Assembly (NCBI GenBank): GCA_001643675.2
Contig: LSRY02000032.1
Location: 1,054,001-1,118,000, forward strand
Origin: Monocercomonoides exilis PA203
Lineage: Eukaryota > Protista > Preaxostyla
Reading direction: 5' to 3'
DNA: 64,000 nucleotides
Below the pieces are notes generated by a model. It did no database searches. It was not told where the DNA came from and saw nothing but the letters and a program-made list of their open reading frames with translations. Position numbers and translations under genes: made by a program. Positions 25,238-60,537 of the stretch are shown here, piece by piece. The first letter of the stretch is position 1. The number at the start of each line of letters is the position of its first letter.

Positions 25238-27190
25238 TTAGTTCGTATCGTGTGTGTGTTTGCAAGTGACAAGTTTTGTCATCAGCTCTGCGCTTTTCAA
25301 AGACATCTCTTTTTCATCTGCAGTTGGGCGAGGCGCAGGCACAACAAGAATCACAGTGGCTGCTTTGCGGCGGAAGCGCTGAGTGACACTGAACAGGCGA
25401 GAGGGCAGAAGGGTAAACGGAGGAACGGTGGCTGTGTAGTACAATCCAGCTGAGTTTGCAGAAGAGGAAGAGGAAGAGGAAGATGAAGATGAAGATGAAG
25501 ATGAAGATGAAGATGAAGACAAAGACGAGGCAGAAGCGATGTTTGCATTGCTCACTTCGTGTGGGTTCTGGTTCAGCTGCGGCGTGGCGAATTTCTTCCT
25601 CATTGTTGTGTGGTAGAGATGGTTGAATGTGACATGGTCCGGAATGGGCATCAGAAAGGCCTCTGTCCCGCGGGGCCGCTCAAAACCCAGCAGATTCTGC
25701 CTCAGCTGCGGCGGCCGCTCAACCGGCGGCGGGTACGACGCGAAGATGTCGGTGGACGGCACTGTCTGTGTGTAGTCCTGTGAAAGCTGCGTAAACAGCG
25801 CCTGGGCTGCCTTCACCCGCTGCTCGTCCAGAGGAGTGTAACCGGTGTGCCCATAATGCAAGGCATCTGCGTTTGCACCGCTTTGCAGATCGGCATTTGT
25901 ATTCTGCGAAACGTTCAATTCTGCCACTTTTCCTTGTCGAGTAAGTGTTGCTGCTTTGTCTTTTCCGTTCATCTCATCTTCCTTCCCTGATGAAGAAGAA
26001 GATGTACCAGAAGATGCTGCAGATGCAGCTCCTGAGGCATCCACCGGAGTTGGGGCTGCCACAAGCAAAGTGTTCACCATATTTCCATTCGGATCAGGCC
26101 GGTGTGTAAACAACTGGTCGTGCCTCCACTGCCCATCAACAATATACTTGAAATAGTATTGTCCTGGCGGAATTGCAAGCGTTATTGCCCATTTTCTTAT
26201 CCACACGTTTTTGCGCAGTTCCACTCCACCTTCTGGGTTTGCTGCAGATTGCGATGACTTTGTTATCTCTTCTTTGATCTGTTTGACTTGCTCTGGCGTA
26301 TAGCTTCCACTCTTTACATCGTCTTCTGTTGGTCCATCGAAATCACTTGGAGATGGTTGAGGTGTTAGTGGTATTTTATGTGCCCAACGATTGAAGGATC
26401 CTGTTATATATACATTTTGCAAAGCTCCATGCTTCCATGTAAATGTGACATGAACATAAACAGGACGAACTTGCTGCGGTTGAGGTTGAGGTTGCTGCTG
26501 TGACTGTGTTTGCTGTTGTTGCTGTTGTTGTTGCTGCTGTGATTGAGTTTGTGCTTGTGTTTGTGGTTGTGGTTGCGGTTGTGACTGTGTTTGTGACTGT
26601 GTTTGTGTTTGTGATTGAGTTTGTGACTGTGACTGAGATTGTGGTTGAGGTTGTGTTTGATGAGTTTGCTCTGTCGTTTGTGCTTGTTGAGTTTGAGCTT
26701 GAGTTACAGAAGGTTCGGTTGAAGAAGAATTTGAAGTGGACGTTGTTGAAGATGTTGAAGATGTTGCATTTGAAGGATGTACATGAGCTTGATTTGTTGC
26801 ATCAATTTGTGCTTGCTTTGCCAAAGATGATTGATTGTAAGATTTATCGTCAATTGTCTTTGCAGATGGATTTAACGGAGATGCATCATGTGTCAATGAA
26901 GTGGTGTGTGCTTTATTTGCATCAGGCGAAGTGGTATTTCTTCCAGGAAGAGGAGAACGATTCTCTTTAGGAGATATTGTTGATTGATAAGAAGACTTGT
27001 CTGAAGGCAGTGCATGTTGGGTTGTATCTGTGCCAATACCTCCACTCTGAACATTGCTCACATTTGCGGCTTGTATCGGCGATTTTTCTTGACCAATTGC
27101 TGCAGTTGTATCTTGGATAATATATCGAGAAACTCTACTTGTGTCTTGATCTTTATCTCCTTTTATTTCCTTGCTGTTTAATGGACCCAT
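25238..27190 (-). CDS. PRKAB: AMPK/SNF1 beta subunit (CBM48 glycogen-binding domain + C-terminal AMPKBI)
   Basis: First ATG gives MGPLNSK (MGxxxS myristoylation consensus); VTFTWKHGALQNVYITGSFNRW, PPGQYYFKYIVDGQWRHD..GNMVN, PPQL..PIPDHVTFNHLY, TQRFRRK. Exact 3' end uncertain. Confidence 0.9.
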   Translation of the reverse strand: MGPLNSKEIKGDKDQDTSRVSRYIIQDTTAAIGQEKSPIQAANVSNVQSGGIGTDTTQHALPSDKSSYQSTISPKENRSPLPGRNTTSPDANKAHTTSLTHDASPLNPSAKTIDDKSYNQSSLAKQAQIDATNQAHVHPSNATSSTSSTTSTSNSSSTEPSVTQAQTQQAQTTEQTHQTQPQPQSQSQSQTQSQTQTQSQTQSQPQPQPQTQAQTQSQQQQQQQQQQTQSQQQPQPQPQQVRPVYVHVTFTWKHGALQNVYITGSFNRWAHKIPLTPQPSPSDFDGPTEDDVKSGSYTPEQVKQIKEEITKSSQSAANPEGGVELRKNVWIRKWAITLAIPPGQYYFKYIVDGQWRHDQLFTHRPDPNGNMVNTLLVAAPTPVDASGAASAASSGTSSSSSGKEDEMNGKDKAATLTRQGKVAELNVSQNTNADLQSGANADALHYGHTGYTPLDEQRVKAAQALFTQLSQDYTQTVPSTDIFASYPPPVERPPQLRQNLLGFERPRGTEAFLMPIPDHVTFNHLYHTTMRKKFATPQLNQNPHEVSNANIASASSLSSSSSSSSSSSSSSSSSSSSANSAGLYYTATVPPFTLLPSRLFSVTQRFRRKAATVILVVPAPRPTADEKEMSLKSAELMTKLVTCKHTHDTN

Positions 27191-27467
27191 CAACTGATCC
27201 GGAACAACGGGCACCAGCCGATATCAATCAACAGATCAAAAGAACTGAAAAGATTCGCACAATTATGATCTTTTTCCGTAATTCTTAAATAATGATCAAT
27301 TAGTTGTTGAAATATTTCGTGCTTAACTTTTTAAAAAAGCTTTAAAAACAAGCTTAAAAATGCTAACTCAATCAAAAGTCATAAAATGGCATTAAATTAC
27401 GAAACACTTTTAAAATGTTGAATTAAAGTACTTTTTTTGTTTGTTTAATACTCACAGTGAGAGAATT

Positions 27468-29220
27468 TTAAATAACACTTTTCGTGAAAGAAAGCTTAAT
27501 AAGTTGTCCGTCGAGCTGTGTGTTATGTTTCAAGCACAAAGTATTTGTTGCTTCCTCCACCGTGTTGTACTTGACCAGGTACATATATTTCCCCGGAGAG
27601 GTTGTGATGGGTTTTGCTGCCTGAACTTGAGCGTGTTCTGAGAGGTGTCTAACAAGTGCCTCTTCTGTTGTAACAGACGACAGATTCGCCACATGCAGAA
27701 CGGCCGACGGCGGCGCCTCGATTTTCCCGCTGGCAGTGGCTGCCACTGAAATAGAGCGGGAATGCCGATTCAGGTTGGTTGTCTCGTACTCAACGGTGCT
27801 GGGCCCTTTGGATTTGTCGTCGTCTTCCATCGACCCTGAGGCTTCTTCAGAGGAAGATGAAGAGGATGAGGAAGAAGAAGAAGAAGATGATGATGATGAT
27901 GATGATGAAGTAGAAGGTGAAACTGTTTGATAGCGAGAGACATTCACGTCAATTGTTGTGCCGAAGAGTGCTGCTCCTCTGAGGCAATTCATCGCCTGTG
28001 TGGCCTGCACGGGGTCTGCATATTGAACCAGCCCCATGTTGCGGTGGGAGTGGAGTATCTTCACTCTTATGATATATCTGAAATGTGTTGTCAAAAAATA
28101 AATTCGAATTAAATAAAATGATATGAAATATGAAATATGAAAAGATGTGTTATATTATTTCATGTTAGCTGCACACCCATAATTGCTGAACAGATTAAAC
28201 AGCTCGTTGCATCCAACTTTATCAGCCGGGAACCCAGACACCAAAAGGACGCAGCCTGAGCCCTGCCCAAAGCTCCCTGCGCCTCCCGCCCTCGACGGCA
28301 TGCCTCCGTAGCCCATCCCATCCATCCTCCTCAGCCCAATCCCTCCTCCAAAGAACGCCCCGGCTCCTCCTCCAAATCGCGCATCGCCCCCCATTCGAAG
28401 CCCCGATCCAGGCAAGAGCAACCCCGGAGATGACGAGGTTTTCGTAGGAAGAGATGGATTTGTATAATCTCTCGCATAATCAGAGTTTTCCTTGATTTCA
28501 AGCGAAGTCCGATTACTGAATGTTATGGAAAGTGTGTTGCAGCCGCTGTAAATATCTTTCCCATCAAGATTCATTTTTGCCCTGACAGAAGCATCAACAC
28601 TTTTAAATTGAACCAACGCTTGGACAACTCCTCCTTTCTGAAATATTATTATTCTTTGAACACTTGGCAAACCACTAGTTTCATATGGAGAAAAAATAGT
28701 ATTAAGTACATCAACAGTAATGGGGTACTTTATGTTTGTGATTGAAACATGAAGAATTGGCGATGGAGGATTTGACGGAATAGGTTGATTATAAAAAGAA
28801 GATTGTGTACGATCAGTCGTAAGCTCTTGGTAAGATGAGTACTGTGCAAACATTTTTGATCCTCTTATATTTATAACATAAGTTTGTATATTGTAATCAA
28901 AGAAATAAATAGTGAAAAAAAAATCACACTTTAGTGAATATCCTGTTCCAGGAAAAGCAGCCAGAAAAGCAGCTGCTTGATTTATTGTTTCAAATTGCAC
29001 CATAACCTGTTTTTTGGAGCGTATTAAAAGAGAATTTGTAACATTTCCAAAGGGCCTTGCCAGTATGAAAATATCTTCCTGAAAGAGGAATTGTCTATTC
29101 TTCATATTTAAAAGACAAATAACAAACTAATGTAACTGCTCCAGAGACATTTCGGAAATGAATAACTTTGCTTGGGGGTATTTCAGCAACAGATGGATTT
29201 GAAGGTGGAATATAATCCAT
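27468..29220 (-). CDS. PTBP: Polypyrimidine-tract-binding protein / hnRNP-L family, 4 RRMs, 4 exons
   Basis: MDYIPP..PPSKVIHFRNV|EDI..PFGNV; YPITVDVLNTIFSPY..VQALVQF..LDGKDIYSGCNTLSITFS; LFNLFSNYG|YIIRVKIL; PPSAVLHVANL..IKLSFTKSVI. Introns 29079-29127, 28864-28929 and about 28078-28177. Confidence 0.92.
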
Positions 29221-39237: not shown

Positions 39238-42200
39238 TCAATAATAATGAGACTGCATATACGAATCGCCTACAAACTGAGAGGGACTCTTCGGCTGTTT
39301 TGGCTGTCCGTACTGCCTTCTTTGCAATGGCTTGCTTGGAAACTTGTAGTCATCCATATAGTCATCGTCAGCCATCGTAGCATCGCCTGCTCCCATCATC
39401 CCCATCCCGTCATCGTGATAGAACCCTTCCAGTTCAGGCGATTCCTCCTCAATTCCTTGGTAGTAATCCACACGCCCCAACATGCATTCTGGGAGTTCTT
39501 CCTCTTCCTCTGCGACCCATGCTGTTCTCTGAGGCATCGGCGATTGCAGAGTGCTCTTCTTCTTCTTCTTCTTCGGCTTCGCTCCAATAGAAGTCATCGA
39601 CGCTTCGCCTATCAATGCACTCTCAGGTCGAATAATTGGCGATCTGGTTCTTTTGAGCCACTTCCTCTGCTGCTCCTCCTCTTCTCTCTGCATCTCTTCC
39701 CTCAGCTTTTCCTCTTCTCTCCTCATCTTCTCCAGCTGCTTCTCAATATCCCTCTTTTTCTCTTCCACAAGCTCTCTTTCCTTCATCTGCTGCTCCCGCG
39801 CCTTTCGCTGCTTCTCCTTCAGCTCTGCCTCGGCCCTCTTCTTCCTCTCCCTCTCTTCCGCCAGCATCGCATCGTGCTGCTTCTTCAGCTGCCGCTCCTC
39901 CGCCTCTGCCATCGAGTCGCGTTGCTCCTTCATCTGCTGGAACTCCAGCCGCATCCGCGCTGCCTCCCGCTTCTTCTGCTCAATCAGACGCAGCTGCTCC
40001 ACCTGCGTCTGTGTCACTGGACGTGTTCGCAAAGGAGACTTTGTCGGTGTTCTTGCGCGCTGCTTTGACTGCGACGGGCCTTTTCTTGACGGAGAAACAG
40101 GAGAAGGCGCCTCAGCCGAGTGAGTGTACGGAGAGGAAAGCGAAGACGATGAGACAGCGTAGGAAAAAGTGGAATGGAATGGCTTTTTTGTGCTTTCTGT
40201 TTCTCTCAAGCGAGGATGTGTTGACGGCCACGAGGTCTGTGGGCGAGCGCGCGGGAGAGGAGAGCTCCTGCGCATGGGAATTGTGTCAAATGTGGACAGC
40301 TGGCGCTCCTGGAAGTGACTTGTGTCATACTGGTCGTCAATTGGTATGCTCTCAAAATCGTCTTCCTCATCGTCACCCAGCTTCTGCCAGCTTTCCATTG
40401 TGTGGAACAGATCGTATTCATCGCTCCCGTACAGGGAATTTGTAGCGCTGCCTGTTTGCTGCTGCAGCGAACGAACCTGTTTCTGCTTTTTAGGTGATGT
40501 TGCACCAGATTTCCGTGTCTCACCAGAAACGGTGGCTGGGCGCACTGAAGACAGTGCCAGCATCTTTTCTCTGTTTGCCCGCTCTTTCTCGATTTCTCGA
40601 CGGATTCTCGCTTGCTCCTTCTCCTTCTTCAGCCGCATCACACGCTGCTGCATCTGCTTCAGCTGCCGTTCTGCTTCCGTCACATCCTTCCACTTTGCCG
40701 GGGCAGCTGGGGTTGAGCCATTCGAACCATTTGAACCAGACGAGCGCTGATTCGACTTGCTCGAGCGCAAAGAGCTGGAAGCAGTGGTTGAGCGTGGGGG
40801 AGGAGATGCCAATGAAACAGGGCCAGAAGAAGCTGAAGGAAAAGAGGAAGACGAAGAGGTGGAAGGCGACAGAACAGATGGAGATTGTTGGAATGATGTT
40901 TGCCTGCTTTGCAAAGGAGTCTGCTGTGAAACAGAAGAAACGGATGCTCTTTGTGACGACTTCAGCTTTCGTGATGGAGATTTTGCTGAACGTTGTGGAT
41001 GCATTTCACTCTGATACTGTTGTTGTTGCTGCTGCTGCTGTTGTTGCTGTTGCAATTGCAGTTGTTCAGCTTGCAGTTGATATTCCTGTTCTTGAAGTGG
41101 CTGTTCAGTGTGTTCAAAAGAAGGAGGATTCAACATCATGTCCAAACTGTCCCGTCTGTTTTGGGTGGAATCATCTGTAACACTTTTTGCTGGCATCTTC
41201 TGAGAATCAGAGAGAAACGGCTTTGGCTTCTTGCGCGTGGCCTCCACATACTGTGCATTGTACACCTCCATCAGCCTCTCCTTCTGCAGATCCCGCACAC
41301 GCTTCATTCGCCGCTCTGTGCTCTTCATCCTCTTCGACCTCCCTTCGCTCTTCTCAGCCGCATTCAGCTGCAGACGATGCGGCATTTCTGCCTGAGAAGA
41401 CGAAGACTCCATCACATTTGCAGCAGATGCAGGCACAGCACTTGCGTCAGACGGAGGAGAAAGAGGTGCCGTTTTGACATCAGACAGATAGGACACTGCA
41501 GCTGGCTTGGCTATTTTGTGATGTGTTCCTGTGGATGGCCTCGTTTGGGGTGCGGAGAGAGACACAATTCGATAGTAGTTCCTGTTTTCGGGCGTTTTCT
41601 GTGTGGAATAAGGAGAATCTTCAGAGTTGTCTTCAGAAAATGCTGGAATGACTGGCGATGCTGTTTTCACTCCCCGCTTTGGATTCTCATCGTTCATTGA
41701 AGCAATCACAGGCTGCCTGGTTTTCATCCTTTGCGGTGCTCGTTCAGGCAGATTGGATGCTCTGAGAGCAGAAGTTGTTAGTGTGGGGGATGAGGAGGAG
41801 GAGGAGGAAACAGTGTGATATGCAGGCGATGAAGATGCATTTCCTGTTTGGTGCTGATGTGGCTCCTCATTGAATGAAGGGGCATTTCCTGTGTTTGTGC
41901 TGTTGCGTGTGGAGCGTATGGGAATGGTGGTGATGGATGTTGTCATCGACTCCTGTGAATTCTGTTGTTTTCGATGTTGAATGTTCGGTCCACTGAAAAT
42001 GTAATCAGATTCACTCGGAGGAGATGAGTTGTGTGAAGATGGAGGGAAATGAGGATTTGACTGGAACAGGTTGTTGACAGCAACAGAATCCGCAGAAGGC
42101 GCAACGGAAGAAGGTGCTTGGGTGAAGTGAGTTTGCTGATGGGAGTGATGTGGCTGATAGGAAGAGGCAGAATTCAGGGAATCAGATAGAATGTTCTGCT

Positions 42201-45200
42201 CAGCAAAGGATGTCTGCGAGTGAAGTGGAGGAGAAGAAGCCAGAGAGAACGAGGCGTGTGAAGATAAAGTGGAGGAAGAGTTGAGTGAAGTGTTGGCGTT
42301 TGAATAAGACAGCTGGCGCTGATGTTGATGTTGTTGATGATTCTGAGGTGTGTGGTGAGATGATGGGGCGGTTGCATTCAGTGGAGCAGATGAATCGCCG
42401 AACTGACAAGAGAAAGAAGGCGAGGGTGATGAAGAAGCAGAAGGTGAAATGCGGATGGGCGTCTGTTGAGAAGAATAAGAAACAGGGGTGTGATGTGAAG
42501 GTTGATGCGATGAAGTGTTTGAATGAATGGCAGAGTTGTTGGCAGAAGCAGAAGAAGTGTTTGACCCATTCGTCATTAAAAGTGGATTCGGAGTTGGCTC
42601 ATTGTACAAACTGAGAGAAGAAGTAGAGAGAGAAGTCAGTGTCTTTGCAGAAGGAGAGGCAGAGAGGGACTCAGGTGTCGCAACCTCCGAACTGGCTGGT
42701 CTGGGTGACGACGCAAGCGAACCAAAGCCGACTTTCAGTGGGCCAGCTGAGTCAGAAGTGAGGCTGCGTTTGAGTTTTGAGGCGTTGTTTGTGGAGTGAG
42801 GAAGGGTGCTGTCAGAGCTCAGCCGCAGGAGATGGGATTTGGACTGTGCTGGATGCGTCTGGCGGATCTGGCCGAGGGAGAACGAGTTGTTGCGGATGGC
42901 ATACGCTGGCGGCTTGCTGGTTGAAGGAGACGAGCGAAGAGTGGAAGCTCCAGAGTGGATGGGTGTTTGCAGAGCAGCAGCAGAACTATAAGGCGAGTCA
43001 CCCTCAGAGAATGTGTCAGAGGGTGGTGAAGGGTCGAGAGATGAAGAAGAGGCATCAGGTGGTTCTGATGATGGCTGTTGTGCTTGAGTGTCTGTGATGG
43101 CTGTGGAAGTTGAAAGAGCATTCATCTGCTCAAATTTCAAGCTCTCCAAAGATGAGTCAGAATCCTGTTGTTGTTTGATCTGCTCTGAAGGAGCATCAGA
43201 TGAAGAGAGTTGTGAATGCGAAGATTGTTCAGAAGCGTTTGAAGAAGACACATTCATCTGCTCGTTCCGCTCATCAGCAATTTCAGCAGAAGAATGACTG
43301 AAAGAGCTTCCATGGATTTCTCTCTCTTTTGCTTCCACATCTCCTTCTCCTTCTCCTTCTCCTTCATCTCCTTGTTCTTCATCGAATTGCTCATTCTCAT
43401 CAGCCACACTCATTCTGTCATCGTCCAACATGATTGGCACATCGAAGTCTCCAGTCAGTTCGCCTGGTTTCTTCGCATAGCCCCGCCAGTCGTAGTGGCC
43501 TCTGCTGGTGAGCTCTCCCTGCGCACCTGAAGGCTCCTCATACACTCGCTGTGTCATATCGCCATCTTCTATTCCACACACACTCAGCTCAAAATCTCCT
43601 GTCAATTGTCCTGCTTTGATCGGATAGCCATGCTCGTTGTAATGTCCTTTTTGGCTGTCTTCTTGTTCATCTGCATCTTCTTCATTGTCCAACACTGAAA
43701 CATTTAGTTCTACCTCCCCCGTCACTTCCCCTGCTTCTATTGCATATCCAGCTTCATTGTAATGCCCTTTTCTCTTTGCTTTCTCTTCTTTCACTTCTTC
43801 TCGTTTGAATTCTCTTTCTTTCGTTTCTTCTTCAATATCTTCCTCGTTATCCAGCATTACCATATTCATCTCCACTTCTCCAGTCACTTCTCCTGCCTCA
43901 ATTGCATATCCTGCTTCATTATAGTGATCTTTCTTTGTCTTTTCTTCTGCATATTCTTCTGTCTCATTTTCTTCATCCTCATCCAATCCAAAGTCCATCT
44001 CCATCTCTCCTGTCACCTCCCCTGCTTTGATCGCATATCCTGCTTCGTTGTAATGTTCCCTCTTCTTCTTCTCTTCATCTTCATCCTCTTCTTCTTCTTC
44101 ACCATCCCCAAATTGCACATTCATTTCAATCTCCCCTGTCACCTCCCCTGCTTTCGTTGCATATCCAAACTCATTGTAAATGTCTCCATGTGTCTTCGAT
44201 GATGCAACTTCCACACTTCCTTTCATGCAAAAGCTCCTTTCCTTCGCAGTTTCATCTTTCTCTTCTTTCTCTTCATCCTTCTCCTTCTCCTTCTCCTTCT
44301 CCTTTTCCTTTTGTTTCATCCTCTCCTGCCTCCTTCGTGCAAGTTCTTCTTGTGCTTTCTTGATCTCCTCTTCTTCCTCTTTGCTCACCTCCACACGAAG
44401 CTCTTCTTCCACAGCTCCATTTCCTGCGCCCCTTTCCTTCATCTTCCTCTCTCTTTCCTTCCACTTCTCTTCTGTCTTCTTCCTCTCCTCCACAATTGCT
44501 GAAATCTTCATAAACGCTGCTCTGAATTCTTCTGCCTGCTTCTCCTGCTCTTCTGGAGTCATCTCATTGTTCTCCTTCTCCTTATCATTATCCTTATCCT
44601 TATCCTCTGAATTTAAGTCTTCTCCATTCTCGTTTGTTTCATCTTTCGCATCCTCTTCTTTTAATTCTTGGACTCCATCTTTCTCCAAACTCTTGTTGCT
44701 TTGTGTCTGTCTGTCTGATAACAGTTCGGGTTCAATTGTTTCCGAAAACTCTTCTCCGATGATCTGTTCAGTTCTTGCTGTTTCTGTCCCACTCGAAAGT
44801 GTTTCACTGTCCCATGACCCAGCAATGCTGATGTCAAAATCTCCTGTCACTTTCCCTTCTTCTGTCACTCGCTCAACTTCTTCCATTCCTTCCACTGTCA
44901 AATACGCTGCTGACTTCTTCCGTGCAAGTTTCAACCAGTTGCTCAGCCCACCCATGATCGAGAATGTGGCTGCTGACATCCCTTTGTTCTCTTCTTCCTC
45001 TTTCTTCTTCTTTTTCTCTTCTTCTTTCTGTTTTGCTTCCTTCTCTTTTGCATCATTCGTCATTCGCGATGGCGTTCGCACAATCCCCATCCTCTTCTCA
45101 ATCAGTCTCTGTTGAATGATCTTCTGATATTCTCTGTCCTCATCTGTAAACTCATCATCATCCTGAAGTGCTGATATCATGTTGGAAAGTGTTAAGGCTT

Positions 45201-48200
45201 GTTTTTCGCTCTCTTTTGGTTGTTCTGAAGTGGATGGTTCATTCTCTTCTTTTGATTCTGTGCTTTCTTCTTTCTCTTTGCCTTCTTCAGAGTTCTGTTT
45301 ATTTGAAATAGATTCTGAATGGTTCTGTTCATTCAAAGGTTGATCTGCTGATTCTTGTTGCTCTGATGAGGCAGAAGATGTGTTTTGCTCTTCAGCTGAT
45401 TCATTTTCATTGAAAGAAGAATTCTCCTCAGATGTGTTATTCCAATCTCTTTCCACTATCTCTCCTTCTTTTCTTCCTTCTCCCACTTCTTCCTCTCTCG
45501 CATCTTCATTTCTTGTCTCTTCATCTTCTTCATTTCCACTTCCACTTCCATTTTCTCTCTCAGTCAGCATTCCTGGAAGCGACATGTCAAACATCCCAGT
45601 GATCTGCCCTGGCGCAACTGGATATCCAAGTTCATTGAAGTGCTCCTGTTTGTAATGCTCGATGTCTTCCACAAGAAGTTCTGTGCCTTTTTTGCTGCTG
45701 TTCTCATCCTCCCCATCTTCTGAGTCTTCCTCCGGCAGAGCCAGCTCAAATGCCCCGGTGAGATGTCCAGGCTTCTTGGAATAGCCTCTCTCGTCGTAGA
45801 TGTCATCTTCCTCATTCTTTGCTCTTTCATCGGCTCCTTCTTCTCTTTGTCTTTGTCTTTGTCTTTCTTCTTTGTCTTCTTCTTCTTCTTCTTCTTCAGC
45901 CACAAAATCACCGCTGAGTTGCACCTCAAAGTCACCTGTGACTGTCCCACTCTGTTTGGGATATCCGTGTTCATCATACAGAACATGCGCTGTCTCACTG
46001 GTTGCTGGCAATGTGCTGCCTGACACATCTTTTGGTGTCTCGTTCTGTGTTTGTGTGGACAGATGAATGAAGTCTTGCTGAGCTGTCTGTTTGAGTGGCT
46101 CTTCTGATGTTTCTGTTGTGCTTGTTTGTTGCTTAGCAGCTGATGATGACGAGTCAAGTGACGATGGAGACGAATTGTTTGCTAACCTGGCTTGTCTTTC
46201 TTTCCTTCTCCGAGCAAGTTCTTCTTGTGCTTTCTTGATCTCCTCTTCTTCCTCTTTGCTCACCTCCACACGAAGCTCTTCTTCCACAGCTCCATTTCCT
46301 GCGCCCCTTTCCTTCATCTTCCTCTCTCTTTCCTTCCACTTCTCTTCTGTCTTCTTCCTCTCCTCCACAATTGCTGAAATCTTCATAAACGCTGCTCTGA
46401 ATTCTTCTGCCTGCTTCTCCTGCTCTTCTGGAGTCATTTCTTCACTTTCTTTTTCCTTTTGATCGAGTTTTTTCTCATTGTTTTCGAACTGTTCTTTATC
46501 TATCTTTTTCTCTTCTTCCTCCTCTTTCTCTCTTCTTTCCATTTTCTCCTCGCTACTTTCGAGTGCAAGTGGCAGCTTCTCTAAGCTAATTCCCTGTTCT
46601 TCGCTCAATGCACACTTCAATGCTTGATCTTCTGACAGCTGGTCAACAATGATCTGTTCAGTTCTTGCTGTTTCTGTCCCACTCGAAAGTGTTTCACTGT
46701 CCCATGACCCAGCAATGCTGATGTCAAAATCTCCTGTCACTTTCCCTTCTTCTGTCACTCGCTCAACTTCTTCCATTCCTTCCACTGTCAAATACGCTGC
46801 TGACTTCTTCCGTGCAAGTTTCAACCAGTTGCTCAGCCCACCCATGATCGAGAATGTGGCTGCTGACATCCCTTTGTTCTCTTCTTCCTCTTTCTTCTTC
46901 TTTTTCTCTTCTTCTTTCTGTTTTGCTTCCTTCTCTTTTGCATCATTCGTCATTCGCGATGGCGTTCGCACAATCCCCATCCTCTTCTCAATCAGTCTCT
47001 GTTGAATGATCTTCTGATATTCTCTGTCCTCATCTGTAAACTCATCATCATCCTGAAGTGCTGATATCATGTTAGACAGAGTTAATGCTTGCTTTTCACT
47101 TTCCTTCTTTTCGTTTGTTTCTGCAACATCTGACTTCGCTTCTTCCTCTCTTTCAGAAGTTGTGTGCTCTTCATTCACATCATTGTTATCTGTTGCATTT
47201 TCTTCATTGGCTTTGTTGTTACTTTGCTCACTCTGCGCTGATTCTTCTGTTTCTTCTTCTTTGTTTTGTTCACTTGTGTTTAAAGCAGGCTCTTCTTCGT
47301 ATCTGCTTCTCTGTGTTACGTCACCATCTTCTATTCCACAAACACTCAACTCCATTTCTCCTGTCACCTTTCCTTGTTGAATTGCATACCCAAACTCATT
47401 ATAATGTCCCCTTTTACCATCCTTCTTTCCTTCCTCATTTGTTTCGTCCTCTTCCTCTCCTTCTTCATCATCCATCTCCATCACACTCAATTCAACATCG
47501 CCAGTCACCTTTCCTTCTTCAATTGCATATCCAGCTTCATTGTAATGCCCTTTTCTCTTTGCTTTCTCTTCTTTCACTTCTTCTCGTTTGAATTCTCTTT
47601 CTTTCGTTTCTTCTTCAATATCTTCCTCGTTATCCAGCATTACCATATTCATCTCCACTTCTCCAGTCACTTCTCCTGCCTCAATTGCATATCCTGCTTC
47701 ATTATAGTGATCTTTCTTTGTCTTTTCTTCTGCATATTCTTCTGTCTCATTTTCTTCATCCTCATCCAATCCAAAGTCCATCTCCATCTCTCCTGTCACC
47801 TCCCCTGCTTTGATCGCATATCCTGCTTCGTTGTAATGTTCCCTCTTCTTCTTCTCTTCATCTTCATCCTCTTCTTCTTCTTCACCATCCCCAAATTGCA
47901 CATTCATTTCAATCTCCCCTGTCACCTCCCCTGCTTTCGTTGCATATCCAAACTCATTGTAAATGTCTCCATGTGTCTTCGATGATGCAACTTCCACACT
48001 TCCTTTCATGCAAAAGCTCCTTTCCTTCGCAGTTTCATCTTTCTCTTCTTTCTCTTCATCCTTCTCCTTCTCCTTCTCCTTCTCCTTTTCCTTTTGTTTC
48101 ATCCTCTCCTGCCTCCTTCGTGCAAGTTCTTCTTGTGCTTTCTTGATCTCCTCTTCTTCCTCTTTGCTCACCTCCACACGAAGCTCTTCTTCCACAGCTC

Positions 48201-51200
48201 CATTTCCTGCGCCCCTTTCCTTCATCTTCCTCTCTCTTTCCTTCCACTTCTCTTCTGTCTTCTTCCTCTCCTCCACAATTGCTGAAATCTTCATAAACGC
48301 TGCTCTGATCTCATTTGTCTGCTGATCTTGTTCCTCTTTACTTGGCAAACGTTCTTCATTGATGTATTTGTTGTTCTCATTCACCTGCTCTTTTAAGGCT
48401 TCGACACTGACAGATCTGCTTGTGATGTCTCCCATCGAATATTCCAGTTCAAATTCTCCTGTCAAATGCCCCGGCCGGTTGGGATATCCAAATGCATCGT
48501 ATCCTTCAACACTCGCAGCAAAATCATTGGCAACTTCTTTTGGTGCATCGCATTGCTCCTTCTCGTAATTAGACTCATTCGATTCGTTTGATTCATTCGA
48601 TCCGTTCGTCTCGTGCATCATAAGCTCAGCCTCTGCCTCGTCTGCCGAGTGGTCTGACTTTGCTATTGGATTCTGCTCATTCGAAAGCGACCGAGTGCTG
48701 ACATTTGCATCACATTCATTTGAGTGAGTAGATTCATCGTGTGTTTGTGAAAGGGGGTTCGTTGCACACTCGTCACTTTGTGTGTTCCTGTTCTCTTCTC
48801 CTGCGTGCTCAGCATACGAGGAAGAGGCGATGGGCTGGTTGGCTGCTTCTTTCTCGTTTCGGAGATCGTTCAGCGGAAACGCAGCGGTGTTTGGGTCAGA
48901 ATAAGACAAGACGAGCGAATTGCTCGAAGTTGAGCTGTTTTGAGAAGGCGAAATGACAACATACGAAGCAGTGGAATATGTTGACGATAGAGATGACGAT
49001 GATGAAGTGTTGAAGTTGTTTGTTGGAAGGCTGTGGGAAGGAGCAGATACTGCTGAGGTTGAGGATAAAGAGGATGTTGAAGCAGAAGTTGGGACAGAAG
49101 AAGAAGAAGAAGCAGAAGCAGAGGCAGAAGCAGAGGCAGAAGCAGAGGCAGAGGCAGATGAATTAGCAGAATTGGCTCCTCCGCGTGTGGCTGATGAAGT
49201 GCTGCCTATCCGTGGCATGGGTGGCTTCGGGTGAGATGCATAGTTAGAATTGGAAGAAGGAGCAGAAGGAGCAGAAGGAGAAGAAGGGTATGATTGGTGT
49301 GCAGTTGCTGGTCCAAAGGCAGATGAGGTGTCCATTTGGAGAGGCGGAGTGAAGGAGCTGTGAAATGCCTGGATGGGCGACGAAAGAGAGTGTGACTTAG
49401 TGATGGGAGAGAGAGAAGACATGTATTTGGGCTCAGGAAGGCTGTGAAGTGAAGGCGAATGGCCGATGTTCTCGATGGACTGGGTGGATGCGCTGGGGTC
49501 AGCCGAAGACAAAGGCAGAGAACGCTCCTTTGGTGCTGCTGAGTGCAGTGGCTGTGGGTTGTGGGAGGAGGAAAGCTTGGACTTTTTGGGGGAGTGCGGA
49601 ATGGCTTCGGGGGGAGAAGAGAGGGAAGAGTTGTTCTGAATGGAGAAGTTTGAGGGAGTGGAAGAAGAGTGTGAGGAGTGTGAGGAGTGTGATGTGTCGT
49701 GGAATGTCTGTGTGTCTGTGTCTGCCTCAGAAGTGTTGCCTGGCAGATGCGACGCTGGCGGGGCTGACAGAACGGTGGCTGTCAAATGTGGAGCGTCTTC
49801 ATCTTCCTCTTCTTTGCTGGTCTTTTTGGATGAGGTGGGCGAAGAAGACGGTCTGTCTTTGAGGGAAGAAGTGTGGTGTTTGTGGGAGACAGCTGGAATA
49901 ATCTCAGATTTTGGTGAATTGCGAGGAGAAGAAGACGAAGAGGGGTGAGGCTCTTCAGTGTGGTGTGAATGAGAGTGATATGAATCAGAAGAGACAGACT
50001 CATTGGAAGAAGAAGATGACGAGGAGGAGGAGGGAGAAGAATGAGGAACTACATCATTTGCTGCCTCCTTTGAAGATCTGTGCTTTTGTGATGATTTCAA
50101 ATCTTTGGAGGGAGCAGATGAAGCAGAATGAGTGTCATTTGAGTGATGTGAGGGTGATTGCTTTGAAGACGGCCTTTTGGAAGGTGATGGTTCTGCTGGT
50201 GGAGAATTTGTATTTGCATTTGCTTTTTGCTTCGTCTTTTGAGATGACCTTTCATTCTGTTCAGAATTTTCCCGTTTTTTTGAATAAGCAGCGTGACTGT
50301 CATTTTCATCGTGTTGTGTTCTGCTCCTCTTCTGAGGCACCGAATGAGAGTCCATCGTCTCCTGGCTGTCCTTCGAAGGCGCCTGTGATATTCTGCTTTT
50401 GGGTGATTTCGGCTTCTTTGAGTGAGAAGACGGGGTGTTTGCATCGGGTGCGGGTGAAGTGGCTGGTGATGTGGTTGACTTGCGTGTGTGGGCAGAGGCA
50501 GCAGAAGGCGAATGTGCAGGATCAGGTGGAGATGACGGCACAGGGGATTTGTGGGGCGAGCGCGGACGAGAGCTTGTTTTGGCAGACGATGGCGGCCTTT
50601 GTTTACTCTTTTCTGGAGATTCTTTCGAATCAGCTGCTCTTCTGTCTTCTTTGTGCGAGCGCTTCGAAGTCCGCATTTCGCGTGCTCGCTCCGATGACAC
50701 AACAGATCGCCCAGTTTCAGACATGCCATCCACTTTGGACTTATCCGTCTGTTCTTGGCTTATCTTTTTGCTGCGTCTGCGTCTGGAGTTTGTTGGTGTT
50801 AATAGCAGCTTTCCTGAGGTCGTTTCAGATTCAAATGTGAGGTCCTGACGTTGTTGTTCCGGCAGGCTTGTGCTGCTAAAATCTGTGGTGCCTCTGGATG
50901 CCAATTCTTCTTTGAAATGAGTAAGCTGCCACATTTGTTGCTCAAAAAGTTGCTTTTGTTGTGTTAGCTGCTGCAATTTTAAATCAAATTGAGCTTGCTT
51001 CAATTTTATTTGCTGTGCCAATTGTTGATTTCGTTGTTGCCATGAAAAAATGAGTTGTTGATGTTGTCTGTTAAATTCTTGTTGCTGCTGAAAAGGATTA
51101 AGACCTGAATGAAGTAATTGTGCCTCAAGTTGCTTAACTTGTAGCTCAAATTGCTGTTGAATAATCATTTGCTGTTTTTGGATTTCGCCTTTGAATATTG

Positions 51201-51389
51201 TTTCATTTGTTTGCAGTTGATTTATTTGGGATTGGTTTTGCTTCAATTGTTGAGTAAGATAATCTTCTTGAAGCTGTGCTTGAAGCATTTCACCGTGAAA
51301 TGACTCGGTATCAATACCGCCTTGTTATAAAAGAAAATATTAAAAAAATGCACTTTAAATAAATCATATAAAACAGTCATACTTGTCAT
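39238..51389 (-). CDS. Giant (~4029 aa) largely disordered protein with a central acidic repeat array and terminal coiled coils
   Basis: Uninterrupted 4016-codon ORF; extended by a 7-nt first exon (ATGACAA, 51389-51383) and a 62-nt GTATGA..AAG intron (51321-51382) giving MTSGIDTESFHGE-MLQ. No catalytic motif recognised. Confidence 0.88.
43739..48308. repeat. Internal direct duplications in the giant ORF
   Basis: 43739-44525 = 47522-48308 (787 bp, offset 3783); 44759-45183 = 46649-47073 (425 bp, offset 1890); 44339-44562 = 46214-46437 (224 bp, offset 1875). No mismatches seen by eye; duplicate antisense ORFs in the track agree. Confidence 0.92.
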
Positions 51390-52522: not shown

Positions 52523-55500
52523 TCACTTCTTTGGAGTTTGTTGTTTGCTTGGAGTTTGTTTATTTGTCATCTTTTTCAAAGGAGTTTCTGTTTGCTTTGA
52601 TGGTGTTTTCTTTGGGGTCTGAGGAGATGTTGTTCGGGCAGGTGAAAATTGTGCATCGGGTTGTGGCTTTTTTGAAGGAGAAGCAATTTGCTTTGTGGAT
52701 GTAGCCTTTCCGGGGGATTGATATGGAAGAGAGGTTCCTCTGTCACGGTGAGAATGGCTCAAATCTGATGTGCTTTTGCGCTTTGTTGGTGTCTGTTTCG
52801 GAATAACAGGTGAGTCTTCCTCGTCTTCTTCAGCTCCGAATTTGAAATCATCACCATCGCTCGATGAGAACTGGTCATCGTCAGCAAGATCAACCTCAGA
52901 CATTTCACTTTCGCTGTCATCTTCATCAAAGTCCTTCATTGATCCTTTCCCTTTTCTGCCAGATACTTCATCGTCGTCTTCGTCGCTGTCGTTCTCCACA
53001 TCGTAATCGTCATCATCCAAACTGTCTTCTGCATCAATTTCTTCATCCATTCCGCCTTTCTTTCCATTCTTCTTGTTCCTCTTGTTATTCTTTTGCGCCT
53101 TTATCTTCTCCTTTTCATCATCTTCATCTGCAAAGTCAGCTCCATCATCTCCTTCATCATCAGCAAAATGATGTTCTGCCTCTTCATCCGCAATCACCTT
53201 CTGTTCCTCCTTCTCCAAGCGCATCCTTCTCATCCTTCGTGATTGTGGTGTTGAATGCTCTTCATTTGTGTCATCGCTACTTTCCTTTGCTGGTGTCAAC
53301 TGTTTAGCCTTTGGAAGCTGCTTTGGAGTTGTTGTGGCGCTTTCGTTGGGTTTGGACAATGCTGATTTCTGAGGTGTTTTCGTTTTCGATGCATCAGGTG
53401 TTGCAGCTCCCATTTCTCCTCGCGCACGTTTTGTTTTCCCTGACATTATAATACCAGCTGCAGGTGTTGCTGTAGCATCTTTCTCCTTCTCGTTACTCTT
53501 TTTCGCATTTTCAGCCAAAGTTGTTTTCTGTTCTTTTGGTGTTGCTTTAACTTGCTGTTCTGAAGTTGGTGCAGCTTTGTTTGTTGGTGTTTGTGGATTC
53601 TGCTGAGCCTTCTTCTTCGTTTGGGGCGTCTTCGTCTGCTTTTCTGGCTGATTCTGTGCTTTGTTTGGTGTCTCCATTGGCGCAATGTTCTCCTGTAAGT
53701 TGGACTTTTCGTCTTTGCCTGCTTTTATTGGTGTCTGTGGCTGTTGTTTTGCTGGTGTTTTCTCGTTCTGCTTTTCAGATGCTTGTTTTGCAGGCGTCTT
53801 TTGAGGTGTTTGTTTTGCTGGTGTATTTTGTGATGTTTGCTTTGCAGCCTGTTTTGAAGGTGTTTCTGTCTGAGCATTTTCTGCTTTTGCTTTCTGTTTT
53901 GGTGTCTGTGTTTGTGATTGAGGCTGCAACGTTTTGTCCTTTTGAACAGGAGTCTTTGGTTGTTGCTTCGCAGGTGTATTTGGCGCTTGAATGGTAACTT
54001 TCTTGTTTGTGTCTTTTGTTGATGCAGCAGAAGAATCCTTCGATTCACTCTTATTCATTTGCTCTTTAATCAGCTTTGCCAGTAAATCGTATCCTGAATT
54101 AGATGAAGCTGATGCAGATGCAGATGCTGATGCTGATGCTGATGCTGATGCTGATGCTGATGGTTGCTGTTTGAGCAAATCGTCCAGAAGACCTGTTTCC
54201 TTCAGCTCGTTAATAAGCTGCTTAGGAATAACATCAACCATTGAAGCCACAACATAACACGATTGCTGCAATGCAACAAGATTAGAGAGAGAGATTGACG
54301 AGTCAGATGAGTCAGATGGATGTGCCAGACGTTTCAGAAGTTTCTCCGCAAATTTCGGAGAAATGTGTATGATTCTTTTCAGCGAGGCTGATGAGAATGA
54401 TGAAATAAATGGATTGAACTTATTTATTTGCTCTTCTTCGCCTTCACTCTTTTCGCTTTCTTTTCCTTTTTCGTTGCTCTCCTGCTTCTTTTGCTTTTCA
54501 TTGTCATCTGCAACTGAGTATTCCACTGAGACAGCATCAGCCAGTGTTGTTTCCACACAATCAATAAGCTGATTCCACTTGCTTCTTCTTTCTTCATCGC
54601 TTTCTATCTTCTCTTCAGACGATTGCACAGAAGAAAAGACAGCCATCACATTCGCCAGAAGAGAAGAAGATGTTGCATTAGAAATAAGCCGTTGGATGCG
54701 GCGGATTGGCAGAGAATCGCTTGATGATTCAGACAGTCCCTGATTCGATTGGAACAGACTTTGTGGCAGTGTGGATGTGTCTTTCTCTTCGATCTGCAGA
54801 CGCGACGAGTACACATACAGCAAAAGAGAGCGGAGTATTGTCAAAGCGAATCTCTGAAGTGACGTCAAGGAAAGATCTGACTGTCCTTCTTCTTCGCTGA
54901 ATGACGCTGGCGCCATCAAAGACACTTCATCCAGCAGTGAATGGATGAGGGTGTGCATCTCATTCACATGAGCTTTGTCCATCTTTGCTCTTTCTGCCAT
55001 CCGCTTCCTCATCTTCTCTCTTCTACGTAACGCTTTCTTCTTCTTTCCTGTTAAGTTCTCATCGTATTCGTCGTCTTCCTCTTCCTCCTCCTCTTCTTCC
55101 GCTTTGCTCTTCTTCTCAAACATATCATCATCAGAATCTTCTCCTTCACTTTTTCCTTCTCCTCCTCTCTCAAACATGTCATCACCGTCTCCTTCTTCTT
55201 CCTGTTGCTGGCCAAAGAAACCTTCTTTTCCTCTCCTTTCGTCAAATCTCGAATTCCCTTCTTCTGCTTCTGCACCAAACAATCCACCTTTTCCTTGTCC
55301 CTCTTCGTTTCCTTCGTTCTCCTCTTCATCGCTGTCGTCATCATCGTCTTCCTCATCAAAAATCAGATCCTCATCGTTCATGTCCAACGTGCTGCCGGCT
55401 CTTCTTCCTTGCGACGTCAGTCCAGCAAGATCAATAATACTTTCTGTTCCTTCGTCGTCTCCGTCTTCTGGTTCGCCTCGAAGTACTCTCAACACTTTTT

Positions 55501-57382
55501 GCTGTTCTGCGCGCTCCTTCTTCTCGTTCAGGGCAGCAGCAATGTCTGATGAAGCGCCTTTGATTGGCTCAGACAGCATTGAGAAGCAGGCAGAGTCGAC
55601 ACAGCGACGAAGGAGAGGAGAAGACAGAAGAAGAGAAACAGCTTTTGCGGATGAATTGTTGGATGGCTGAGAAGACGTGGTTGATGAGGCAGATGATGGT
55701 GATGAAAAAGCAAGAGTGAAAAGAGCTTTGAGAAATGACACAAAAGATTGGTTGTCCAACAGCTGGATGAGCGACTCGTCGATCTCTCTCAGCACAAACG
55801 GGGCGAATGCTGACAAATCAACATTTCCTGTGGCTTTCTTAATAGCAGCTGCTGAAGACGGAGAGGACAGCATATCGTCTCTTGTTTGGCATCCTCTGAC
55901 GACAAGAGAGAGAAGCACAGGCATCGCATTTTGGTTGCCGACAACTTGAGACACAAATGTCTTCATCCCTTTTGCCATCGATTTGAGAGAAGAGGGAGGA
56001 AGAATTGACATCGAGTGCAGCGCTACACGACTGCCTGTCTGCTGGTCAATGATGTGGATCCAAGAGCCTGAATGTTAAAACAATGAAATAAAGATAGATT
56101 AGTGAATGATATCGAAGTTTCTTCAAAATGCAAAATACTCCAGGGAAAAAAAAGTATGTTCTTTTAAATTCTTTACAATTAAAATCAAAAATGATCAACA
56201 ATTTCTTTTGAACTATATTCTCTTCTTCTTTCTTTTACATATCATTCCATGATTTGCAAACCTTTCATTGATTTTGCCATTTCTCGAGTAATAAGTGGGT
56301 TTGCCAGACGCATAAAGTTTTCAACGCAGAAGAGCGACAGTGCATGATGCAAGATTTCCTTTGATATGACTGTGTCGCTAGCCACGTGCAGTGCATGCAG
56401 CACTCGTTGGCGGTCACCGGGGCATTTGGACAGATAGGATGTGATTGTTGGGATTGGCGTAAGCTTCATCTGTTGCTGTTGCTTTGGTGCTTGTTTGGAA
56501 GCTTGCTGTGGTGTATATGCGGCTGAACCTAATATTAGTGTGCGTTGCCTATTGAGGAGCAACTGTCGTGCAAAATATATAATAATTAAAGTTAATTATT
56601 GTTCAATTTTATTAAAATGATATAGTTTTCCAAACTCTTATGCTTTCATCTATCACAAATGTCTTACGTTCTGGCGGAACCACTTGTTTCTTTTCTCTTT
56701 TGTATAACTGTGTTTTAATAACTGTTACAGGATTTGTTTTCACTCTTTTGAGAAGAGATGTTTTATGACTAATTATCAACCCTGGAGGCAGATAAGATGA
56801 ATTTGGATCCAAAAAATGAGCCCAAATTTGAGCTTCAAATGCTTGCTGCATTCTTGAGCTTGAGTATGTTGTGTAAATCATATTTATAATTGCAGAACCG
56901 ATTTTATGTTTGAGAAGACGAAATGTGAAAGGGAGAAGTTCAAGTGCTATATTTTCACGATCCTTCTTGTTACCATGGCGCAATAATGCCCCAATTACGT
57001 GAGCCCCATAGGAAGATGCAGTGATGTCATAAAAATGTCCTTGTAATTCGCTTATGATAGCTTGTCGTTGTTGATCCGTGCCAAACTTGGCAATTGCTTG
57101 AACATATCGCGCAGTCTTATTATAGACAAAAAATATTTGATTAAAATCATTTTTCAAAAAATTTTGAAGCGATTGATATCATAAAAAATAAACCTCGTGA
57201 TTTAAACAGCAAGTTGGAACGTTTCCTTTCATTAATAGATATAATCGTTGGGCCAGCTTCTCTTTTTCGCTTTTACTCCCTTTCTTTTGCAACAGTTTGA
57301 TCCAATCCCTCTTTCCCTGATCAATTACAGGAGAAACTTTGGATCTTTTTGGATAGTTCGATTTCTGATACCCTTTTTGCAT
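52523..57382 (-). CDS. PUM3: Puf6/PUM3 nucleolar Pumilio-repeat protein with long acidic and TP-repeat C-terminal tail, about 4 exons
   Basis: GKRDWIKL..EKEKLAQRLYLLMKG..HE|TARYVQAIAKFGTDQQRQAIISEL..SSYGAHVIGALLRHG..LLKHKIGSAIINMIY; later HT..GSRVALH..KSMAKGMK. Confidence 0.85.
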
Positions 57383-59079: not shown

Positions 59080-60537
59080 GGCAATAACTGAAGATATGGG
59101 AACTCCTGGAATAAGTTTATTTCTGTTTCTAATGATTTATTATTTATTATTATGTAATTATTATCTCCTAAAAACATGCGAAAACTGGTCAAAAAATATA
59201 ATATTTATTTTTTGAAAAAATGTGATTTTGAAGAATTAATGGGTTTGATCACACATACAACAAATGTCTTTATCACACCGAATGTTCACAAAAACACCTA
59301 TTTGTGAACTCAACGATATATTTTCGGATGAAATGGGTGCTTTGAAATGGTATTTCGAAAATGTGCTGGAAGGAGAAGCTCCAGAATGCAGACTGATAAA
59401 TGCAAAATGATATTCAGATCTGGGAGGAAATATTACAAATATTGGAGATGCGGAAAATGTGGCAAAAAACAGTCAGTTTTTAAAAACACATCTTTGGAAA
59501 ATTCGAAAATACCACTGAGAAAGTATTTGATGATTGTTTTGTATTATTACATTGGAATATCAGCCGCATACATTTGTGAACTGCTTGGAATAAGTGAAAA
59601 CACAATACATTATTGGACGAGTGTTATTCGAGTCAGATGCACATCAATTTGGAACAAAAATCAAGCTGTCATAGGAGAGCTGGGAAGAATTGTGGAGATC
59701 GACGAAGCGGTTTGGAGGCGCAGAAAGTGTGGACGAGGGAAAATGAAGAGGCAAATTTGGATATTTGGTGTTGTGGAAAGGAAACCAGAGGGAGGTGCGG
59801 GAAAGAACTTTGTGATGATTGTGCCAAATAGGAAGGCTGGGACATTGGTTCCAATTATACGAGACAAAATTCCTCCTGGAACTCGGATTATGAGCGATGA
59901 ATGGAAGGGTTATGCCAGATTGAAAGGTTATTGTAATGCTCATGAAGCTGTCTGTCACAAGCGAGAATTCAAAAACAAAATTACACATGCCTGCACAAAC
60001 ACTGTCGAAGGTTTGAGGAAGAATTTACGGTAATTTTTTCCAAGAACTGGATGCAGAGAAAAGTATCTTGGGGACTATTTATCTATGTGGCTGGTCAGAA
60101 GAAATTTGCAAATACAATTTGAGGAATTAATAAAAGAAATCGTCTTCGATTTAACGGAAAAAGAAAACGAATTGGGAGAATTTGAAAGTGAAGAAAGTGA
60201 CTCGACAGAATCAGAGCTAGAATCTGATATATTAGATGAAAATGACATTCTTCAAATGACAGAATTTGAAGAATCAGATTCACTTGGAGCTGGGGACTGT
60301 GCAAGTGCATCAGAATTTGACCCCATGGAAATTGATTAATTATTTTTTTTTTAAATTCTTATTTTTTATAATTCATTCATCCATTTTTCCTCATTTATTT
60401 TTGTATTTATTTTTTTTTTGACTTTTTTGTCAACTTCTGCACATCTCCGATGCATGAAAACATGATGTATATTATTAACATTCCTCATATATTAATTTCA
60501 CGGAAAAATGGCCATTCCTATATAATGCAGTCTTGCC
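59080..60537 (+). mobile_element. Merlin (IS1595/ISXO2-like) DNA transposon, 1458 bp
   Basis: Perfect 8-bp TSD ATCGACTC at 59072-59079 and 60538-60545; imperfect ~23-bp TIRs GGCAATAACTGAAGATATGGGAA / GGCAAGACTGCATTATATAGGAA; internal DDE transposase. Confidence 0.93.
59264..60339 (+). pseudogene. Disrupted ISXO2-like DDE transposase
   Basis: MSLSH..IFSDEMGALKWY..APECRL, frameshift near 59395, then YWRCGKCGKKQS..VEIDE..IWIFGVVER..IMSDEWKGY..VCH..TNTVEG, in-frame TAA 60031-60033, then FFPRTG..YLGDYLSMWLVRRN and an acidic tail. Confidence 0.88.

Follow-up and report, generated by a model that had tools for sequence, protein, structure and literature searches.

Short motifs repeated along disordered scaffolds are known from the poly-SIM (SUMO-interaction motif) region of RNF4 and from the tandem beta-zipper repeats of bacterial fibronectin-binding proteins. 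Here, we compare with these systems a repeat array of Monocercomonoides exilis, a gut protist and the model eukaryote without mitochondria, much of whose proteome is unannotated. The array is encoded by a 12,051-nt open reading frame (ORF) at 39238-51288, on the minus strand, of a 64,000-nt stretch of the genome of strain PA203 (contig LSRY02000032.1, positions 1,054,001 to 1,118,000; hereafter the window, to which coordinates refer unless another contig is named). As in the described arrays, short conserved islands recur in fast-evolving, charged and disordered sequence, and the conserved part resembles an amphipathic strand of the kind that could bind by beta-strand addition. In contrast, the M. 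exilis motif has no sequence similarity to the RNF4 or fibronectin-binding repeats, its invariant G-Y...G..T-G core is absent from them, and binding is here only inferred. As a sequence family the motif is new, although its kind, that of motif arrays in disordered scaffolds, is familiar. Our best explanation, to which we give about an even chance as a whole, is that a selected motif, in an array subject to gene conversion, would make the giant protein a multivalent docking scaffold acting via a turn-plus-strand module.

The pattern [YF][ND]..GY....G.[VLI]TG..[ED][LMVI] has exactly 15 matches in the giant protein, between residues 930 and 2617 (43438-48501). The first Y is replaced by F in one copy (residue 1884), and two half copies read G-K-V-T-G-D-F-D-I (residues 1515 and 2145); the same pattern search thus agrees with the initial annotation, which had counted 15 full copies, one with F for the first Y, and two half copies. 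The array's amino-acid composition predicts 1.5e-8 full motifs and 8e-5 cores, and 2,000 shufflings of the array gave one core match in total. The residues G5, Y6, G11, T14 and G15 are invariant across the motif copies, within which 29 of the 41 array tyrosines fall. The conserved unit spans 19-25 residues, with the extended consensus [KR][KR]-x-H-Y-[ND]-E-x-G-Y-[AP]-x-x-[AP]-G-x-[VLI]-T-G-[ED]-hydrophobic-[ED]-[LMV]-x-[VL], followed by an acidic run; copies start 40-60 residues apart and are separated by spacers of 20-35 highly acidic residues. Because the lone copy 1 (VEG-YDAFGYPNRP-GHLTGEFEL) aligns gap-free with the half copies (VEG-MEEVERVTEE-GKVTGDFDI), a half copy is a full-length unit with an altered first half.

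The array consists of about 2.6 copies of a super-repeat of some 630 residues (1.9 kb), in which a charged helix (H) module is followed by a cluster of three to six motif copies, an acidic linker, and an M module with a half copy. The helix-module string (RAAFMKISAIVEERKK...) occurs three times (residues 995, 1631 and 2256) and the M module (ALTLSNMISAL...FSIMGGLSNWLKLARKK) twice (residues 1401 and 2031). An alternation of motif clusters with a helix module and an M module, between Ser/Pro/His-rich arms, had been described initially, and three H modules, two M modules and the arms were indeed found:

39238-51288, minus strand: giant ORF, 4,016 codons and a stop; no intron joint in the part covered by RNA contigs
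50884-51288, minus strand: N-terminal segment, residues 1-135, Q-rich (31% Q) and helical-looking by composition; no Pfam match
48589-50883, minus strand: arm 1, Ser/Pro/His-rich low-complexity sequence, residues 136-900 (composition: S 27%, P 10%, H 5%)
48445-48501, minus strand: motif copy 1, lone, residue 930, YDAFGYPNRPGHLTGEFEL (pattern match)
48028-48387, minus strand: helix module H1, residues 968-1087, RAAFMKISAIVEERKK... (sequence comparison)
47347-47961, minus strand: cluster A1, motif copies 2-6, residues 1110, 1152, 1195, 1249 and 1296 (pattern match; 129-nt tandem unit)
47905-47961, 47779-47835, 47650-47706, 47488-47544 and 47347-47403, minus strand: copies 2-6 singly (pattern match)
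46711-47088, minus strand: M module 1, residues 1401-1526, with M-N helix, K/E linker, M-C helix and a half copy at 46720-46746
46120-46491, minus strand: helix module H2, residues 1600-1723
45583-45978, minus strand: cluster B, motif copies 7-9, residues 1771, 1831 and 1884; the most divergent copies
45922-45978, 45742-45798 and 45583-45639, minus strand: copies 7-9 singly (pattern match)
44821-45198, minus strand: M module 2, residues 2031-2156, with a half copy at 44830-44856; 423 nt DNA-identical to M module 1
44245-44607, minus strand: helix module H3, residues 2228-2348
43438-44178, minus strand: cluster A2, motif copies 10-15, residues 2371, 2413, 2456, 2510, 2550 and 2599 (pattern match)
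44122-44178, 43996-44052, 43867-43923, 43705-43761, 43585-43641 and 43438-43494, minus strand: copies 10-15 singly; copies 10-12 DNA-identical to copies 2-4
40669-43338, minus strand: arm 2, Ser/Pro/Thr/Gln/His-rich low-complexity sequence, residues 2651-3540 (composition)
39241-40668, minus strand: C-terminal region, residues 3541-4016, with charged helical stretches and an acidic aromatic tail; no Pfam match

Clusters A1 and A2 are both built on the 129-nt tandem repeat unit, and parts of the array are identical at the DNA level: residues 995-1255 to residues 2256-2516 (783 nt), and residues 1406-1546 to residues 2036-2176 (423 nt). The identical tracts border abruptly on diverged sequence and sit within segmental duplicates of 87-92% identity (43546-44554 versus 47308-48337, and 44321-45216 versus 46196-47106). 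Identical tracts with such sharp borders are what recent intragenic gene conversion, or else unequal exchange, leaves behind, and an artefact of assembly or polishing is less likely. We therefore take the array to be homogenised by gene conversion. Because of the 783-nt tract, three of the 15 motif copies are DNA-identical duplicates and hence not independent, and the giant gene has 12 distinct DNA versions of the motif. Neither these recent duplicates nor the paralogue described below had been noticed in the initial annotation.

A single further gene with the motif was found. Genome-wide searches covered 82,301,135 bases in 101 contigs, the published Oxford Nanopore (ONT) assembly of M. exilis PA203 having 101 contigs and ~82.3 Mbp (PMC8767320). 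The back-translated core GY....G..TG has 16 matches genome-wide, 15 of them in the giant gene and one on contig C36, versus three for a reversed control. The match on C36 lies in an unbroken 2,020-codon ORF (C36:1259502-1265564; L020:3503-9565; minus strand), the product of which carries very long poly-Ser and Ser/Pro tracts. BLASTP comparison of the giant protein with this paralogue identified only three shared islands (expectation value, E, 1e-9 to 2e-8), namely M-N at the extreme N-terminus of the paralogue (65% identity over 34 residues, ALxxDxExxDEDREYxKIIQxRLxEKRxG), the single full motif of the paralogue at its residue 185 (HFDEHGYPVKAGELTGTLDL), and M-C with the half motif at its residues 435-480 (46% identity over 46 residues). 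By sequence comparison, this triad of M-N, motif, and M-C with half motif is the conserved core of the family. The H module is restricted to the giant protein in the own-genome search. Weak own-genome matches were obtained on contigs C35, C22 and C32 (E 0.002-0.007), of which that on C35 is K/E-rich low-complexity sequence once translated. The pattern search and protein searches of the same genome, for which the queries were the N-terminus of the paralogue, cluster A2 and the M and H modules, yield one paralogue and no third member. The motif family thus has two genes in this genome, the giant gene and the gene of the 2,020-residue paralogue.

Selection on the motif was measured on 13 distinct DNA versions, the 12 from the giant gene and the one from the paralogue. 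The proportion of synonymous differences (pS) is 0.71, which is near saturation, versus a proportion of nonsynonymous differences (pN) of 0.26. The invariant residues are encoded by a variety of codons (three each for G5 and G11, four each for T14 and G15), and mean pairwise identity is 54.5% over the 19 motif positions versus 13-18% in the flanking 6-19 positions. The motif is thus kept by purifying selection while the spacers drift, in support of the initial annotation, which had proposed selection on a motif with diverging spacers. Recent tandem duplication together with gene conversion could instead have left the repeats behind in a low-complexity gene as neutral, functionless by-products, and the 783- and 423-nt identical tracts and the 129-nt tandem unit do point to ongoing homogenisation. 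However, the motif persists in the diverged copies and in the paralogue, although synonymous differences have nearly saturated and identity in the flanks has dropped to background; the neutral reading is already disfavoured, and we regard it as improbable.

The giant ORF itself runs for 12 kb without an in-frame stop, and this in a genome rich in A+T; its ATG sits 12 codons past the preceding stop. The G+C content of its coding stretch is 0.38-0.51 per 2-kb window, and that of nearby stretches without long ORFs goes down to 0.24-0.30. Of the sampled words of 43400-48500, 65-80% are present in four metatranscriptomic RNA-seq runs, all from a single 2024 study. RNA contigs placed on 43000-48900 show 0 mismatches, no indels and no intron-like joints, and on the array they are interrupted only at internal repeats, the single 'skip' having a 21-nt side and non-canonical ends. 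RNA libraries can carry DNA, so transcription of the array is supported but not proven by these contigs. A lack of RNA-seq support, which the initial annotation had named as a ground for giving up its proposal, was not observed, the contigs covering the array without mismatches. The arms flanking the array are rich in Ser (23-27%), Pro (9-10%) and His (4-5%). Disorder and coiled coils were judged from composition and from a low-pLDDT (predicted local distance difference test) AlphaFold2 model; with respect to the disorder and terminal coiled coils claimed initially, Q-rich and charged termini are present, but the coiled coils and the disorder are read only from these two sources. We take the giant gene to be a real, probably transcribed, single-exon gene of M. 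exilis, the product of which would be mostly disordered.

Of the repeats described in other proteins, the choline-binding 'YG' repeats (PF01473) are similar to the M. exilis motif with respect to a unit of ~20 residues that has an aromatic residue, [ND], G, a later T-G-like turn and a beta-hairpin flavour. However, the spacing of the conserved residues differs, and hmmscan, run on clusters A1, A2 and B and on copy 1, gave no match to PF01473 or to related choline-binding/cell-wall-binding repeats at E up to 10, nor did 1,000-residue pieces of the giant protein in Pfam at E up to 1. The RHS/YD (PF05593) and MORN (PF02493) repeats were likewise unmatched in these Pfam scans. Contrary to the contiguous hairpin solenoid of the choline-binding repeats, the M. 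exilis copies are separated by acidic spacers that are predicted to be coil or helix, and the giant protein, unlike the choline-binding proteins, is without an obvious signal peptide (judged by eye).

More global searches led to the same result. Pfam gave sub-threshold noise only for all parts of the giant protein and its paralogue, and searches of the PDB with a profile of 16 copies and with one unit retrieved nothing beyond partial matches expected by chance (E 0.6-2, e.g. a GFP-like beta-strand and filamin). An ESM Atlas feature search with cluster A2 and the M module returned no usable match, and word-index protein searches with the array region (residues 900-2650), a 401-residue piece and paralogue residues 1-520 were blank. 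Among 1.84 billion representative proteins, the motif profile found five weak matches (E 4e-7 to 7e-4), unrelated repeats that align over 8-14 positions and include Cys-rich tandem units and an MLLE/PABC-like 'YPDKAGKITGMLLEL'. The giant protein itself went unmatched and is hence missing from this library, so the negative does not extend to other oxymonads; by exact look-up, none of five window ORFs is present in the protein collection. A metagenome scan with a 57-nt degenerate pattern gave 36 contigs with one match each, none with several copies, and most of these matches are to a conserved globular bacterial protein ('FDYYGYHHLMGNITGNHD', which we take to be an alpha-amylase-family region) and coincidental. 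The bacterial segment 'F[DN]xxGYxxxMGNITGNHD[LM]', which occurs at L036, L039, L040 and ~20 other metagenome loci, is an expected false positive of the back-translated pattern. The initial statement that no family is recognised therefore stands, as the Pfam, PDB and protein-library profile searches gave no genuine match.

An AlphaFold2 model of cluster A2 built without an alignment (mean pLDDT 45; predicted template modelling score, pTM, 0.47) has beta structure confined to the motif copies, all six of which carry it; local pLDDT reaches 60-73, and successive copies have strands of 18-21 residues. A single unit of 32 residues, modelled with a 13-row alignment of paralogous copies (pLDDT 78.6), is a coil with only one beta-bridge, from Y1 to the residue after Y6. 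Downstream of T-G there is a strict alternation of the form hydrophobic-[ED]-hydrophobic-x-hydrophobic, and this segment would fit an amphipathic beta-strand. The beta-type repeats of the initial annotation are thus recovered, with low confidence, on every copy of cluster A2, but no bead or tandem beta-zipper fold is, and its more specific proposal of beta-hairpin beads or a tandem beta-zipper is not borne out by a single-unit model that has one beta-bridge only. A complex prediction of the three islands of the paralogue scored 0.02 and carries no weight either way.

These models also bear on the main rival to a docking scaffold, according to which the motif copies would pair within or between molecules to give a beta-sheet, fibre or gel, i.e. 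a self-assembling structural material. The long strands on successive copies and a pTM of 0.47 despite the low pLDDT suggest that the model may pack copies together; the half copies retain just the strand part, and the strands are amphipathic. However, the confidence of the model is low and the highly acidic spacers of 20-35 residues should counter packing, and we consider this reading unlikely.

Under the docking-scaffold reading, each motif copy would form a short turn and then an amphipathic beta-strand that becomes structured upon binding, and the array would act as a flexible acidic tether, anchored by helical termini, with ~17 equivalent sites for docking. These sites may bind a folded partner or pair among themselves. 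Several points weigh against this reading: the mean pLDDT of the cluster A2 model is only 45, the single-unit model has no hairpin beside its one beta-bridge, the support for transcription comes from RNA-library contigs of one study without a silent-region control, and no partner was found, tubulin, LC8 and centrin not being among those tested. A further-reaching version, which we hold to be distinctly doubtful, is that the motif founds an undescribed peptide-repeat family, with ~17 copies that would bind or zip up with a single abundant partner, thereby organising a structure specific to oxymonads; the M-N/motif/M-C triad would be the minimal functional unit. Candidates for such a structure, equally tentative, are a nuclear body and the sheets of cross-linked microtubules in the axostyle or preaxostyle. 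With respect to the cytoskeletal 'ruler' suggested by the initial annotation, nothing in our analysis speaks for such a role or for any localisation.

The invariant residues also enabled us to consider the copies as modification sites on a signalling platform, with, for example, Tyr/Thr phosphorylation at Y1, Y6 or T14 that would be read by kinases or phospho-readers. In favour of this proposal, the motif has, in an acidic context, an invariant threonine and two tyrosines that vary little or not at all, but a simple kinase consensus would not need three invariant glycines and a hydrophobic alternation, and there is in our view only a slim chance that it is correct.

A [KR][KR]xHY[ND]E string, present in about half of the copies, is similar to the HYNE segment of inhibitor-2, which reads KRKLHYNE in that protein. 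The His and Tyr of the inhibitor-2 HYNE contact the active site of protein phosphatase 1 (PP1) (PMC3735429). Eight M. exilis copies read HYNE, often after K/R-K/R-x, and the array might on this basis be a series of inhibitor-2-like pseudo-substrates that bind or sponge PP1. In contrast with inhibitor-2 (PF04979), however, the array has no profile or PDB match to that family, no RVxF or KSQKW docking site, a variable His and, at low confidence, a different predicted conformation. At E values up to 10, neither the M modules nor the N-terminus of the paralogue match PF04979, and the PDB searches return no inhibitor-2 chain; a six-frame genome search with PF04979 was also empty, a weak negative since control genomes gave nothing either. 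The docking pattern [RK]x0-1[VI]{P}[FW] occurs once per protein, in both cases far from the array, and its strict form does not occur. The His before Y1 is found in nine of the 13 distinct copies and is missing in four, the invariant G5, Y6, G11, T14 and G15 have no inhibitor-2 counterpart, and HYNE is alpha-helical in inhibitor-2 but beta or coil, with low confidence, in the AlphaFold2 models of the M. exilis motif. We consider an inhibitor-2-like role highly improbable. The genome has a gene for a PP1-type phosphatase catalytic subunit (C2:439131-442220, L070), with at least five short exons.

The analysis yields a selection-backed definition of a new peptide motif, a minimal co-conserved triad and the only paralogue in the genome, and renders an anonymous 12-kb 'hypothetical protein' experimentally approachable. 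Its value is descriptive unless a partner emerges, and it has no bearing on any long-standing question.

Elsewhere in the window, long ORFs of 1,162 and 1,126 residues without a Pfam match lie at 52523-56011 and 11205-14585, both on the minus strand, the latter where the G+C content of the window peaks (0.55). A 658-residue ORF at 25238-27214 (minus strand) combines an AMPK beta glycogen-binding module with an interaction domain and greatly exceeds typical beta subunits in length. An ordinary full-length ABC transporter with two halves, each of a transmembrane domain and a nucleotide-binding domain (18850-22803, minus strand), and an RNA-recognition motif (RRM) protein with RRM_5 and RRM_8 domains (28155-29105, minus strand) have no visible link to the repeat protein. 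At 59347-60033, on the plus strand, a 228-residue ORF with an ISXO2/IS1595-type DDE transposase domain (Pfam E 7e-14) lies in an AT-rich stretch of this eukaryotic genome.

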